A stretch of 63,196 nt of DNA, filler included, from Octopus bimaculoides (lineage: Eukaryota), in NCBI RefSeq assembly GCF_001194135.2. It is 6 parts of 5 records of this genome, joined end to end, with 100 filler letters (N's around TTAATTAATTAA, not from the genome) between each part and the next. Parts side by side here need not be neighbours in the genome. Positions count along the whole stretch, not along the records: positions 1 to 22,055 come from NC_069008.1; 5 more parts are not named here. One strand, given 5' to 3'. Positions within the stretch are counted from its first letter, which is position 1, and each line of letters starts with the position of its first letter. Shown in pieces: positions 13,289 to 18,889 of this stretch. The notes under the pieces are model-generated. The model worked only from the letters and a program-made list of their open reading frames with translations, was not told the DNA's origin and searched no databases. The translations under genes and the position numbers were made by a program.

Positions 13289-13619
13289 ATGTCCCTGTTT
13301 CCCTTTACCCGTCTTGCTGCAATGGAAGTGCTGCTGTTAACCCTTACAACAATCCTGGCTGTTACCTCAGATCAGGAATTTGGTGAAGCTTACTACAAAC
13401 GTTTGGAACCTGGTTATTCCTATGGTTATCTTCAGACATCTCCAACACAACAATTCTCCACCGTATCAAGTGTACTGGAATGTGCCGTCATGGCTCTGAA
13501 CAGCCAATCAGAATTCTTTACTTACCACAAAGTCAGCCATGTTTGTAAGAATTATTCACCGAAAAATATAATGACAGTCGTCAGCATGAATGACAGCAAC
13601 GAGATTTCCTTCTATAGAT
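13289..13619 (+). pseudogene. Exon 1: signal peptide + PAN/apple-like domain
   Basis: MEVLLLTLTTILAVTS hydrophobic leader; SVLECAVMA..FFTY...VC..Y pattern; donor GTAAGT at 13620. Confidence 0.85.
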
Positions 13620-16218
13620 GTAAGTGAAGCTTCTTTATTATTAGTTGTTTTTCTTTCTTACATTGTGCGATAAGATAAAACTACCGGTTGAACACAGAGG
13701 ATCCATGAAATCGACTTATTCCTCTACCATCGAAATTGTGTTTTCGTTGGATCTCTCATAATTTTATTGAATAACTGGTCTAACATTTCATATGCACACG
13801 GGAGTGATGTGAGCCAGAAATTTGACACCCTATCATTACCACGAGATTTCCAATCATGCGCCTTCGTGAGTGCCATCCTGAGGTATGGTGATGTCTTCCC
13901 ATGCTTGTTCTAGTAAGATTTGGTAGGATTCTTCGGTGCGTGTAATCCAGTCTACATTTTCATTATAAGTCTTTTCATCATTCGAGATATTTTTTCAAGT
14001 CTCTTTCAACTACTTTCATTACACGGGTTGGTCTTCAACGGTTATTTTCTCCTTCTCTGTTTTCTGTGGAATGTTTTCACATTGGATGTGATTATCGATT
14101 CTTCTTAAGTAGCAATTCCTTACTGAGGTCGATCTAATCCACTGGACACCTCCAAAATTCCGGGCCTTGTGCCTAGAGTAGAAAAGAATATTCTGCTATT
14201 TTGTGTAAACATGAAATGAAAAAAGTCGTTTAAGTGAAAGCTCGTTAAAACCTATCGTGTTTAGCGTGCTAGAAATAGCAGCGATCACATAGTTATTATT
14301 GTAAGGCTTATAGCACTCCAAGTAGCCATACCAACAAAATCACCTCTTCATTTAAAAAAAAATTATATCGGTATATTAAAAAATTTTCGTTTTATCAAAG
14401 GTATTCATTTAAAAAAACTCCGAAAACTAATGATATCAAAGTTATACAGGCATTTTTTGTATCAAATTTATCCAGGCATTTTTTGTGTAATAGTATGTAT
14501 TCATTCAACGCAAAATAACTTAATAATTATACCGGTATATAAAGAAAAAATTCACTTTATCAATAATATTAATATTCATTTAACAAACTCCGGAAACTGA
14601 TAATATGCTTGAAATTGTGTCTCGTATCAAAGTTATATAGCTACTATTAAATTATCAGTAATGAAAACAGAGGCGAGCGAGAATGAGAGACTGTTGCAAA
14701 TGAAAGCGTAAAATGTTGCCTGCAATCAAATAATAGTTTTCTATAATTAAACATTAAAATCTACTCCGTAGTGAATGTAATGAATATTTAAATTCATGAA
14801 GAATTGAACGCACTTAATGCAATGCATAATTAAATTTGCAAGAATAAACTTCAGACATCGAAATTATAGGCAACTTCTTAGAACATGAATTTATGAAAAT
14901 ATTTCTAGGCGTTCAAGATTTTAATATTGCTTTCATTTAGAACTTGTAGTAATTGTTACATACCTAATTAATAAGCAGCTTTCTCCATTATAGTATAGAT
15001 TATTATTATTATTATTATTATTATTATTATTATTATTATTATTATTATTATTATTATACACTTTAGAATTATTGAGATGGATAGATTATCCTGTTCTGTT
15101 ATTAGCATTATCCTGCGTTTGAGAATAGAATTATTTCCTTATCCGTAGTATTATTATCATTATTGTTATTATTATTATTATTATTATTATTATTATTATT
15201 ATTATTATTATTATTATTATTATTATTATTATTATTATTATTATTATTATTATTATTATTATTATTAAAATAAGGAAGAAGAGTTCCATAATTAAATTTG
15301 CCGAACGATATTTCGGAATCTCGTGTACCTTCAACGGGTTCAAAATTTGATATGTCAGCCTACTTCATTTTTTTAATAGATAATATAGGACTGCTATGAC
15401 TCCTCTGGAGTTAGTTTACTTGGAGTCAGAAGTTGACGATAACAGTTCTCTTATATTTTTATCCAGTCTGAAGGCTACAATATGTGGTTGCGGAAATATT
15501 TGTTTGAAACGAGGATATTTGTCAGCAACATGTTGGTAACTAACATGGAACACTTTTGAAATGCCAGCGAAATTTCGGTGCCAGTTAATCACTAAAGAAA
15601 TTCTATTACATATTTTACTTCGGTAAAATTAAGCGTGAAAGTTTGACTCATTGTAATCACGTTTGACATAATGGTGTAGAAAAGTATTTACATGATTCCG
15701 GTAATCCTCTTTATGAGTACAAATCCGTTTTATCCTAAACAACTGGAATATCAGATTTGAGCGAATTATATGATGTGGATGATCGGAACGCCGGTGGAGG
15801 TAAATATGGGATAACGCTAGTTCTTGCTAGTCGTAAATTTTATGTAGGACTTAAAGCCATAGTTTTTAGCATAACTATCCTGTGATCTTTCCCAGATAAA
15901 TTAGACGTCATCAATGAACCGTAACCAGGGTATTGGTTCAGATCATGTAGGGTCTCAATGTCTATCGTAACTGAACTGTGTCCCGAATTTCGTTTTGAAG
16001 ACATTGGCGAAATTAACTGCCTTGGTGGTAAAAGTTTTGTCCAAACTTCATTGTATTACTTTGTAACACAAGCCTTAATAACCTACAGAGAAAAATCAAA
16101 TGAAATACATTTGTACCTAGACTAAGAAAGATTATTATTATTGATGTTGTTGCTATTGTTATTATTGTTGTTGTAGTTGTTAGTATTATCATTATTGTTA
16201 TCATTATTATTATTTCAG

Positions 16219-16397
16219 GAACTGAATGGATCAAAACCTATGCCATATCAATGGGAGCAAATTCGTTAATCTATAATTCCATCCTCAATATAGGAAGTCC
16301 TTCAACTTGGAATGTGGACAAGTGCAATGGTATCTACTGTCCTAATTTCTTTCAACACCCAATACTTGATATCTGGAACCGTTTACCAATCGAGCAG
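16219..16397 (+). pseudogene. Exon 2
   Basis: TATTTCAG acceptor; TEWIKTYAISMGANSLIYNSILNIGSPSTWNVDKCNGIYCPNFFQHPILDIWNRLPIEQ; donor GTATAT. Confidence 0.8.
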
Positions 16398-17005
16398 GTA
16401 TATATAAACACAAACATACGATACATATATCCTTAGTGATTACAGCTGTAAATTTGCATATTGGGGTGTTTACATTAAATGTGATACGTAAATAGATATT
16501 TTAATCTTATACTGCTTCTATTGTGTATAACAGATCTTTATTCATCCGGGCGGCTCTTCGCAACACCAGTGATTGTTTGTTCATTGTTTTCCTATATAAC
16601 TGTGGCGACATATCTTCTCTAAGCAAGTAGTTGGTTGTGAGTATATAGTATTGACCAGATGCCCAACAGGGTAGAAATGCATGTAGCGGTTATACACGCC
16701 GCTGTTGGGAGAATTCTTTTCGTCTCCCTCTGATATATATTGTGTTTTTAAACCCAGCACGTTTGTTGATGATATTATCACTGGAGAAATATTGCAGTAA
16801 ATTTGCCCATGGCGATGTGTTCCTCATTAAATATCACACACACACGAACATACATATGCACACACACACAAGAACGCAGACATAGACACACAAACACACA
16901 CACACACAAACAAACACATATATACGTACTCACGCACGCGCACATACGTTCGCACATACACACAAATATATGCATATAAATATACATATATTTTGATATC
17001 TTCAG

Positions 17006-17169
17006 GTGAAACTTGTGATCTACAAAAAGCAAACAGCTGTTGTAACGATGGTGTTTGGTGGACGTAATACAACTCTTGAAAACTGGTTCTCTCTCAACAA
17101 CCTGAAAAGTTCTCCATGGAAGGATCTAGTACCAGAGAGTACCAGTTATTTCTCACTTGCTGGATTTGG
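17006..17169 (+). pseudogene. Exon 3
   Basis: ATCTTCAG acceptor; VKLVIYKKQTAVVTMVFGGRNTTLENWFSLNNLKSSPWKDLVPESTSYFSLAGFG; donor GTACGT. Confidence 0.85.
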
Positions 17170-18123
17170 GTACGTTCCGATTACCAGTTTTTGTTAAGTA
17201 TTACCCGTATATTCTAAGTTCGAATACCGCCTTGTTTTTCATTCCCCCGGGTTTAAAAACGTTGGACCAATGAAATACCGAATAGTTATGATTAGCTATA
17301 TGTTCTTCTTCCAAAATTCCTGACATTGTTCCTTCATTAGAAATCAATATTTTTATTATATATTCATCTTTGATGTATCTATCTTAAACTGTTTGGGTAT
17401 ATTTATGTTATATCTAGGAATTATTCAAAGGTAATAGGTGAACCAGCAGTTACTGTCTCTCCATATNNNNNNNNNNNNNNNNNNNNNNNNNNNNNNNNNN
17501 NNNNNNNNNNNNNNNNNNNNNNNNNNNNNNNNNNNNNNNNNNNNNNNNNNNNNNNNNNNNNNNNNNNNNNNNNNNNNNNNNNNNNNNNNNNNNNNNNNNN
17601 NNNNNNNNNNNNNNNNNNNNNNNNNNNNNNNNNNNNNNNNNNNNNNNNNNNNNNNNNNNNNNNNNNNNNNNNNNNNNNNNNNNNNNNNNNNNNNNNNNNN
17701 NNNNNNNNNNNNNNNNNNNNNNNNNNNNNNNNNNNNNNNNNNNNNNNNNNNNNNNNNNNNNNNNNNNNNNNNNNNNNNNNNNNNNNNNNNNNNNNNNNNN
17801 NNNNNNNNNNNNNNNNNNNNNNNNNNNNNNNNNNNNNNNNNNNNNNNNNNNNNNNNNNNNNNNNNNNNNNNNNNNNNNNNNNNNNNNNNNNNNNNNNNNN
17901 NNNNNNNNNNNNNNNNNNNNNNNNNNNNNNNNTTTTAAAACACAGCACTATTCTTAATTCCATGCATCCTAATCTTTGAATGATAGATACATTTAGTCGG
18001 GGAAATGATGGGGAGTTTATTTAAAATGTTGACGTATTCTTTACCGATTTAAAAGTAGAGTAACGTGGAATACGAACAACAACAATATCTGAAACTGGAC
18101 CGTCTTTTGTTTATTTCATTCAG

Positions 18124-18287
18124 CAACAGACGCCGTTTCTATGTGTCCGCCATGCATGGTGGCTGCAAGGATGACTTTGGCTGGCTGATCGTCAATGAAC
18201 GTAACTTTTATTGTGATTGGGAATAATCAAACTATTTCCCTACAATCCGCTACTCTAAAACGGATTCTAAAACCAAATGGAGCAAAG
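18124..18287 (+). pseudogene. Exon 4 (contains TAA)
   Basis: TTTCATTCAG acceptor; NRRRFYVSAMHGGCKDDFGWLIVNERNFYCDWE*SNYFPTIRYSKTDSKTKWSK; donor GTAAGT at 18288. Confidence 0.85.
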
Positions 18288-18836
18288 GTAAGTATTTTGC
18301 ATGAATGTTTATAACCTTGTATATAACCTTAGTCAGACTAACGTTATCAAAAACATATTTAGCCACAGAAAACTTTCATGATTTTCCATAAATCAAGGAA
18401 TCCATAATTCTATTTTAACAGCAATCTTTACAACCCCACTTTAATTAACATTTACCTTTCCAAATCACTTTCATAATTTTATCCATTTTATCCATTCTTG
18501 TTCTCAGACTTTAAGTTAGCCCCTGTTTCCTTTCATAAGTCCTTACTCTGGTACTTCAAACAAATTGGATGCATACATCCTACAGGATGCATGGAGGCCA
18601 GCGAAATGTGCTCCGTAGTTCACATGTCATACACAGGACAAGTAAAGGATTAAATGAAACAAATTATTCGTAACACCCCACCCCCGCAATAGATAGTTGA
18701 TAACATAATTATTTTCAAAATACTGAAGAGAATTTGTATAACTTTTAGTAGTAGTAGTAGTAGTAGTAGTAGTAGTAGTAGTAGTAGTAGTAGTAGTAGT
18801 AGTAGTTATTGATTTTGCTATTCTTGATACTTCCAG

Positions 18837-18889
18837 GATATGGAAAAGCTGATTCCATGGCCATATTCATCCAGCTGAGAGAAAATTAA
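18837..18889 (+). pseudogene. Exon 5 (terminal coding part)
   Basis: ACTTCCAG acceptor; GYGKADSMAIFIQLREN*. Confidence 0.8.

Follow-up and report, generated by a model that had tools for sequence, protein, structure and literature searches.

Our question was whether the five-exon locus at positions 13289 to 18889 of this Octopus bimaculoides DNA still encodes a working secreted protein, and what kind of domain forms the C-terminal half of that protein. The stretch analysed, hereafter the window, has 63,196 nucleotides, filler included, and is made of genome parts joined end to end. Positions count along the whole joined stretch. The part that holds the locus comes from NC_069008.1, and the gene lies on the + strand throughout. 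The explanation that best covers both aspects, and that we consider likely, is that the locus belongs to an octopod gene family and was recently inactivated, and that the C-terminal half of the family proteins is a very divergent fibrinogen-related domain (FReD).

The gene model was re-derived from the sequence. Joining five exons, between 13289 and 18889, gives a frame of 891 nucleotides. The frame opens at the ATG at 13289, which is 11 codons before the start of the peptide given in the initial annotation and is the ATG used by paralogs. Each of the four introns has GT at its start and AG at its end, with phases 1, 0, 2, and 1. The exons are listed below, with a slash marking each exon boundary.

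13289 to 13619, + strand: exon 1, codons 1-110 and the first base of codon 111; an open reading frame ending at donor T/GTAAGT (tblastn E 8e-71); signal-peptide-like N-terminus at about residues 1-27, and degenerate PAN/apple-like module at about 45-108, with Cys65 and Cys86
16219 to 16397, + strand: exon 2, codons 111-170; acceptor tttcag/GA; start of the C-terminal domain, with predicted first beta-strand EWIKTYAIS, Cys146, Cys151, and Gln156 (CAA, 16353-16355)
17006 to 17169, + strand: exon 3, codons 171-225; conserved core VKLVIY...MVF.GRNTT..WFS...LKSSPW.DL; conserved sequon N191
18124 to 18287, + strand: exon 4, codons 225-280; the most variable exon family-wide, with invariant Cys239 and Cys255
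18837 to 18889, + strand: exon 5, codons 280-296 and the terminal TAA; predicted last beta-strand ADSMAIFIQL

In tblastn searches of the window, family proteins matched all of these exons, in order and on the + strand (E 8e-71, 3e-35, 9e-33, 5e-21, and 1e-5 for exons 1 to 5). Hence, the structure is far beyond a chance assembly of open reading frames. The same searches found no second family copy in the window. The five exons and four GT-AG introns of compatible phase, put forward in the initial annotation, were thus reproduced exactly, and the translation agrees with the earlier peptide letter for letter.

The spliced protein, with X at two in-frame stops described below, has at least 50 relatives among the matches listed (E 3e-157 to 7e-57). 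All of these are octopod, from Octopus bimaculoides, O. sinensis, O. vulgaris, and Argonauta hians. The family is therefore expanded, as had been suggested. Intact relatives are 293-296 amino acids long and align to the window protein without gaps. The paralog P0002 is 72% identical over 96% of the query (E 3e-136). It is the sole paralog for which junction sequences were read, and has the same five exons, with the same boundaries and phases. The same five coding blocks are found in P0003 and P0004. Shared exon boundaries, which the initial annotation expected of a real gene, are thus present among homologs. The located O. bimaculoides paralogs are at 13.46, 14.43, 14.45, 14.78, and 14.97 Mb of CM046628.1. 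A literature search on the family found no paper.

Exon 1 encodes the N-terminal half. Residues 9-25 are strongly hydrophobic, with Arg8 before and TSDQ after, and the region is conserved in paralogs. This hydrophobic core, and its conservation, suggest a signal-peptide-like start for the family proteins, in agreement with the signal peptide first proposed. The PAN/apple module proposed to follow it stands in part. Residues 45-108 match PAN_3 (E 0.003) and PAN_1 (E 0.08), two paralogs are named 'Apple domain-containing protein' in UniProt, and 25 of 127 wider relatives holding the C-terminal domain have a significant PAN_1 match. On the other side, both matches fall below the Pfam cut-offs (17.9 bits versus 21.1 for PAN_3, and 13.3 bits versus 21.4 for PAN_1), 14 of 16 paralogs likewise stay under the cut-off, only 2 of the 16 have a PAN match at E<0.1, and the module has one pair of conserved cysteines, Cys65 and Cys86. 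An AlphaFold model of the whole protein, made with the 16 paralogs, was too poor to use, with a predicted local distance difference test (pLDDT) score of 55, and 50-60 in the PAN-like part. This low-confidence model gave a partial fold match to the N domain of HGF NK1 (probability up to 0.99 over 74 columns). Known proteins of the PAN/apple class, Pfam PF00024, PF08277, and PF14295, include the HGF N domain, the apple domains of plasminogen and prekallikrein, and adhesins of apicomplexans and nematodes. The octopus proteins resemble them in the weak PAN_3 and PAN_1 matches of exon 1, but differ in having one conserved cysteine pair where those proteins have two or three disulfides. We conclude that 'degenerate PAN/apple-like' is a fair description, and that the data argue weakly for membership of the domain family.

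The C-terminal domain, of about 185 amino acids, is encoded by exons 2-5. In the window protein it has no Pfam match, and neither the single sequence nor a profile gave a PDB match. A profile search of 1.84 billion representative proteins returned 1,096 at E<=1e-3, and 643 at E<=1e-10. The matches cover the last ~145-185 residues, and proteins with two to four of them are frequent. Named holders include amphioxus, crinoids, a starfish, gastropods, bivalves, a flatworm, and a hemichordate. Further holders are a Myxococcota bacterium and several metagenome proteins. Companion domains are PAN, EGF, F5/8 type C, TSP1, C-type lectin, Sushi, ZP, and VWD, which are typical of extracellular mosaic proteins. 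Among the 127 relatives, no Pfam family covers the C-terminal domain. The members share no Pfam family, so that no model exists for the domain itself. The earlier suggestion that the C-terminal pattern recurs in uncharacterised marine-invertebrate proteins is thus well founded. Matches to COLFI, GON, and ILEI occur in only 1-2 of the 127 members, and were treated as neighbouring domains.

Four of the non-animal members are large, at ~900-2,260 amino acids: P0085 (MCK6544734.1, Myxococcota) and the metagenome proteins P0098, P0106, and P0093. Each has, at its C-terminal end, two or three copies of a unit made of a fibrinogen A-subdomain and the C-terminal domain. P0098 also has FG-GAP repeats and MopE-type motifs. 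This is an unusual bacterial home for a fibrinogen-like domain.

What fold does the domain adopt? An AlphaFold model of the P0002 domain only, built from a diverse 31-sequence alignment, is mainly beta and scores well (pLDDT 92.2, predicted template modelling score 0.89). When the model was compared with the PDB, using Foldseek, the best match had E 0.017 and probability 0.82. Fibrinogen-related or intelectin/XEEL structures make up 47 of the top 50 matches. The classes represented are fibrinogen beta/gamma C, angiopoietin-like, ficolins, MFAP4, FGL1, and intelectin/XEEL. Fold matches of the earlier whole-protein model were the same.

A second line of evidence comes from the bacterial and metagenome members. 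In 9 domain copies, from 4 such proteins, a canonical fibrinogen A-subdomain lies directly upstream. Its motif, SC..I...G....G.Y.IDP......VYCDMT.DGGGWT, runs into the first strand of the domain. A profile of the bacterial copies matches fibrinogen beta (E 2e-10), and also FIBCD1, tachylectin-5A, XEEL, tenascins, MFAP4, and intelectin-1, with the matches to FReDs limited to the first ~55-70 positions. With hhalign, the bacterial copies align to human fibrinogen gamma at 92% probability, over positions 9-103; the gamma sequence used agrees fully with 3FIB residues 8-249. When the animal domain alignment was compared with the bacterial one, also by hhalign, the probability was 100% (E 7.5e-57), and octopus EWIKTYAIS fell on GGGWTMVYK. 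The octopus proteins lack the A-subdomain, with its Cys...Cys-Asp-Met...GGGWT, and keep only EWIKTYAIS, the equivalent of the GGWTV strand. We conclude that the C-terminal domain is probably a very divergent fibrinogen-related domain.

Several results weigh against this assignment. The Foldseek matches have template modelling (TM) scores of 0.32-0.45 and root-mean-square deviations of 8-11 A, and none reaches E<=0.001. Direct comparison of the animal domain with fibrinogen gamma, by hhalign, gave no signal (probability 0.1%). Pfam Fibrinogen_C (PF00147) matched neither the window protein nor the 16 paralogs, even at E 0.1-10, and is found in only 2 of the 127 wider relatives. The link to FReDs is thus indirect. 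Because the domain fails Pfam Fibrinogen_C membership, we call it FReD-like rather than FReD.

Such results are what would be expected of an independent new fold, to which the bacterial A-subdomain is merely fused, with Foldseek matches that reflect a generic beta-rich architecture. In keeping with this, sequence comparison links the core domain to no FReD, all Foldseek E values are at or above 0.017 with TM-scores at or below 0.45, and the FReD match in bacterial members ends ~60-100 residues in. We nevertheless find a new fold doubtful. Those 47 of 50 top structural matches fall in one fold family. Furthermore, the GGGWT strand is the first strand of the octopus domain, and the alignment to FReDs extends across it. 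Hence, the junction lies inside one structural unit. Intelectins provide a precedent, since only their N-terminal part is recognisable by sequence. The initial annotation had presented an unnamed Cys/Trp-rich domain as undescribed biology, to be doubted if the region matched a well-characterised domain. The domain does lack a Pfam model, but it looks like a very divergent member of the fibrinogen-related class. The match to a known domain is therefore half there, being indirect and of moderate strength.

We now turn to the coding state of the window copy, which contains two in-frame stops.

13619 and 16219-16220, + strand: in-frame TGA (codon 111), divided between exons 1 and 2
18224 to 18226, + strand: in-frame TAA at codon 259, in the context CDWE-stop-SNYFP

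Both were printed as stop symbols in the peptide of the initial annotation, and passed without comment. They are real in-frame stops, so the intact coding gene implied there is not supported. The uninterrupted frame of 296-residue family members (e.g. XP_052833428.1 and XP_014774936.1) is not kept in the window copy. In alignments, all relatives have a sense residue at both positions, with Ser, Asn, Lys, Tyr, or Arg at codon 111. P0035, which is closest to the window copy over this part (80% identity), has Arg, and exon 1 of P0002 ends in A (A/GT, encoding Ser). Hence, one substitution of T for A as the final base of exon 1, turning A/GA into T/GA, would explain the TGA. At codon 259, Arg, Lys, Gln, or Glu is found in relatives. 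Of the exon 4 copies, the two closest to that of the window, both in the paralog locus L002, read CDWEKSNHFP and CDWEKSDHFP. Since these have Lys, the TAA would most simply derive from AAA by one change, the Lys codon itself being deduced from the residue.

A further departure is R156Q. This arginine is invariant in the 16 paralogs, and the window copy has Gln (CAA, 16353-16355). It is the sole departure among 36 positions invariant in those paralogs; the other 35 are kept, as are all 25 columns invariant across 19 aligned sequences. Other marks of a pseudogene (a frameshift, lost splice sites, or an elevated ratio of nonsynonymous to synonymous substitution rates, dN/dS) are lacking, and all splice sites are intact. 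Pairwise dN/dS is 0.41-0.47 between the window copy and paralogs, and 0.39-0.46 among intact paralogs. With values of ~0.4 everywhere, the ratio is uninformative as a pseudogene test. Because only the stops and R156Q argue for inactivation, and the rest is intact, any inactivation must be recent.

The locus is already represented in UniProt, as A0A0L8FL26_OCTBM (Octopus bimaculoides, 245 amino acids), which is the top match of the spliced protein. Hence, the gene is not 'hidden', as first described. The UniProt model matches exons 1 and 3 of the window at 100% identity, and, apart from a part of exon 2, is identical to the window from exon 1 as far as the TAA in exon 4. It uses a cryptic AG inside exon 2 (junction 13619/16258), so that a single Ser replaces the stop and TEWIKTYAISMGA. 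This removes 14 residues, namely codon 111 and TEWIKTYAISMGA. The model ends at the codon-259 TAA, without the last 37 residues common to all intact paralogs. The protein collection holds no NCBI-source product of the locus, only the 245-residue UniRef model, and the indexed assemblies contain no record of a gene with exactly that product. We regard A0A0L8FL26 as a probable annotation artefact, worth flagging. An alternative splice site that would drop the first stop was also sought and rejected; the sole nearby in-frame AG is the cryptic one, and its use deletes the conserved first strand.

We are reasonably confident that the window copy does not make a full-length protein. On the sequence evidence, the locus is most likely a young, recently disabled pseudogene of the octopod family. 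Some observations count against this. Since dN/dS gives no sign of relaxed constraint, pseudogene status depends on the two stops and R156Q alone. The stops come from one draft assembly, and could be errors or belong to one allele. Furthermore, the locus was not found in the chromosome-level assembly, when five paralog loci with 10-kb flanks were examined and the 245-residue model was looked up exactly.

The gene could instead be functional and full length, with the stops being sequencing or assembly errors, a null allele, or bypassed in the mRNA by readthrough or adenosine-to-inosine editing, which is common in cephalopods. All but two codons and R156Q are indeed intact (the four GT-AG introns, the frame, and the other invariant positions), dN/dS is that of intact paralogs, and the assembly is a gap-rich draft, with seven runs of N in 22 kb. 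We consider a functional gene unlikely all the same. It would need two independent errors, each making a stop. Editing of UGA to UGG, or of UAA to UGG, would give Trp, unlike the residues in relatives, and UAA would require two edits. Moreover, no full-length product of the locus is in the protein collection.

Still less probable is a shortened functional protein, either the annotated product of 245 amino acids or a secreted product of 110 amino acids with the PAN module only. A0A0L8FL26 is exactly such a model, and many annotated family members are short, at 163-234 amino acids. However, the 245-residue product lacks the first strand and the last three beta-strands of the P0002 model; the strands at domain positions 4-10 and 154-182 are the parts lost from truncated products, and the second stop, by itself, would remove the last three. 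Also missing are the invariant residues P264, Y268, S269, W277, D285, and I291. The short relatives mostly end by reading into introns, and look like prediction artefacts or decayed copies. Finally, a premature stop upstream of later introns normally triggers nonsense-mediated decay, and the codon-111 stop lies three introns upstream of the last exon. We retain the view that the locus is a probably dead family member. Both the locus and the family are annotated, but the family is uncharacterised. Being most likely a dead copy, the locus alone matters little.

Annotated relatives of doubtful completeness are frequent. P0035, P0036, P0041, P0024, and P0025 are annotated at 163-234 amino acids, or with long low-complexity tails, and their ends resemble intron read-through. 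Examples of such ends are '...EQILC' in P0035, '...EVCRHIH' in P0041, and '...GAL' in P0015. Decayed copies or mispredicted models seem to be numerous in the family, and the many short read-through models fit a family evolving by birth and death. L002 is the locus of LOC106871660 (P0015), annotated at 215 amino acids and ending in intron 3 read-through. Two exon-4-like copies, both open frames, lie ~5 kb apart in it, at 14119-14439 and 19136-19454. Either the annotated model of LOC106871660 may be truncated, or the locus may have a partial tandem duplication.

The exons of the family have not diverged evenly. Exon 4 is the most variable, with a mean pairwise identity of 0.43 versus 0.59-0.69 for the other exons. 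One close pair has a dN/dS of ~3 in exon 4, on very few substitutions. The synonymous rate, dS, differs several-fold between exons of one gene pair when the window copy is compared with L001, L003, and L004. Against P0004, the window copy has dS of 0.10 in exon 1, 0.78 in exon 2, and 1.49 in exon 4. Conversely, between P0002 and P0003, dS is 0.03 in exon 4 and ~0.3 in exons 1-3. This mosaic suggests exon-level gene conversion or recombination among paralogs.

Note that intron 3 (17170-18123) contains an assembly gap.

17467 to 17932, no strand: run of N, wholly inside intron 3

The join of exons 3 and 4, GG/C, encodes Gly and is in phase, and alignment with the 296-residue paralogs shows no residue missing or extra there. 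The left flank of the gap matches L002 at 13087-13329 and 13573-13614, and the right flank matches L002 at 14119-14439. The flanks are collinear, with a spacing of ~505 nucleotides in L002 and ~620 in the window. Hence, the gap appears to hide no exon, its estimated length is plausible, and continuity across it is supported. A chimeric scaffold, joining exons 1-3 of one paralog to exons 4-5 of another across 17467-17932, would account for the position of the gap exactly between exons 3 and 4, for the different nearest relatives of exons 1-3 and exons 4-5, and for a dS against P0002 of ~1.2 in exon 4 versus ~0.4 in exons 1-3, but is the least probable of the alternatives, since the mosaic also occurs across the gap-free exon 1/2 junction (window versus P0004) and between the intact P0002 and P0003, both gap flanks are collinear and similarly spaced with one paralog locus, and the window holds no second family copy.

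The assembly has seven gaps in these 22 kb, at 1714-1884, 4623-5040, 5949-6092, 9542-9751, 11069-11261, 12564-12663, and 17467-17932. Because the scaffold is a fragmented draft, single-base features, such as both stops, need independent confirmation.

What might intact members of the family do? They would be secreted two-module proteins of ~296 amino acids (~31 kDa), with a signal peptide, a degenerate PAN/apple-like module, and the C-terminal domain. Sequons N88, N101, and N191 are conserved. A lectin-like role may be proposed by analogy with ficolins, FIBCD1, tachylectins, snail FREPs, and intelectins. The C-terminal domain would bind glycans, acetylated ligands, or other surface ligands, extracellularly, on microbes or other surfaces. 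The variable exon 4, which spans Cys239-Cys255, resembles a specificity-determining region and may tune specificity. The PAN-like module could add a second binding or oligomerisation surface. The octopus domain may have lost the canonical A-subdomain upstream of the GGGWT strand, with the PAN-like module now in its place.

The family has much in common with FReD lectins (ficolins, FIBCD1, tachylectin-5A, angiopoietin-like proteins, and snail FREPs). These are likewise secreted, and their domain is of about the same size. The best matches of the predicted octopus fold are all of the FReD class, bacterial relatives carry the canonical A-subdomain (C...G.Y.IDP...VYCDM..GGGWT), and the octopus family has an invariant cysteine pair, Cys239-Cys255, in its C-terminal half. 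As with snail FREPs, the octopus family is a lineage-specific expansion with a variable region. In contrast to FReD lectins, the octopus proteins have no Pfam Fibrinogen_C match and no A-subdomain, and have a PAN-like module instead. In addition, the B/P part is unrecognisable by sequence, and structural similarity is weak (TM-score at most 0.45).

Intelectins, or X-type lectins, such as human intelectin-1 and Xenopus XEEL, are FReD-like by sequence in only their N-terminal ~50-100 residues, the remainder having diverged on a related fold. Similarly, the bacterial members match XEEL and intelectin, at E 7e-9 to 6e-7, over the A-subdomain part only. In the Foldseek list, intelectins take ranks 20, 22, 30, 35, and 48 (E 0.2-0.5, TM-scores 0.32-0.40). 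However, their fold scores are lower than those of classical FReDs, there is no sequence similarity in the core, and they are single-domain proteins of ~280 amino acids without a PAN module.

More tentatively, the octopod family could be a counterpart of the snail FREP repertoire. An unnamed, ancient FReD branch, joined to a degenerate PAN module, would have been amplified on one chromosome, with a hypervariable exon 4 and exchange of exons. The domain would then span Myxococcota to amphioxus, in over 1,000 clusters and often in tandem within large mosaic extracellular proteins, the window locus being a freshly dead member. This broad picture is possible rather than probable. New relative to the databases would be the FReD/intelectin-like assignment, the very broad occurrence of a domain that has no family model, and mosaic evolution at the exon level in octopods. 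The family thus matters more than the locus; its C-terminal domain is common in marine invertebrates, and we found no family model, structure, or literature for it. If the domain is indeed of the fibrinogen-related lectin type, a testable function follows for hundreds of proteins now listed as 'uncharacterised', from molluscs, echinoderms, amphioxus, and some bacteria. Cephalopods lack adaptive immunity. If the proposal is correct, octopods would have previously unrecognised, rapidly diversifying secreted recognition proteins, relevant to cephalopod innate immunity or other surface recognition.

The sequence around the gene has further features. A long open frame at 11262-12376, on the + strand, contains 13 C2H2 zinc fingers in tandem (zf-C2H2 E 3.5e-74). 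The frame begins inside the assembly gap at 11069-11261 and ends ~0.9 kb upstream of the ATG of the family gene. It probably represents the final exon of a gene for a C2H2 zinc-finger protein. An Rfam scan of the window found no RNA families. A repeat of ~230 bp occurs twice in the window, at 721-954 and 2390-2619. It is 96% identical to a copy at 11781-12013 of L005, in intron 2 of the paralog LOC128251094, and has shorter matches in L001-L004. It looks like a young element of the short interspersed (SINE) type. Spurious open reading frames of this repeat, on the minus strand (592-963 and 2384-2665), have no Pfam match. Other dispersed repeats, at 7634-8182 and 3862-4125, are 85-92% identical to sequence in introns and flanks of L003, L004, and L005.

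Microsatellites lie both within and beside the gene. They are (CT)21 at 13193-13234, 55 nucleotides upstream of the ATG; (ATT), with ~89 units, at 14999-15267 in intron 1; (CA)n at 16835-16918 in intron 2; a perfect (TAG)20 at 18746-18806 in intron 4; and (TTG)15 at 18917-18960, just past the stop codon. One last feature follows the final exon, and is a candidate from its sequence only.

19028 to 19033, + strand: AATAAA, a possible polyadenylation signal, 139 nucleotides past the stop codon

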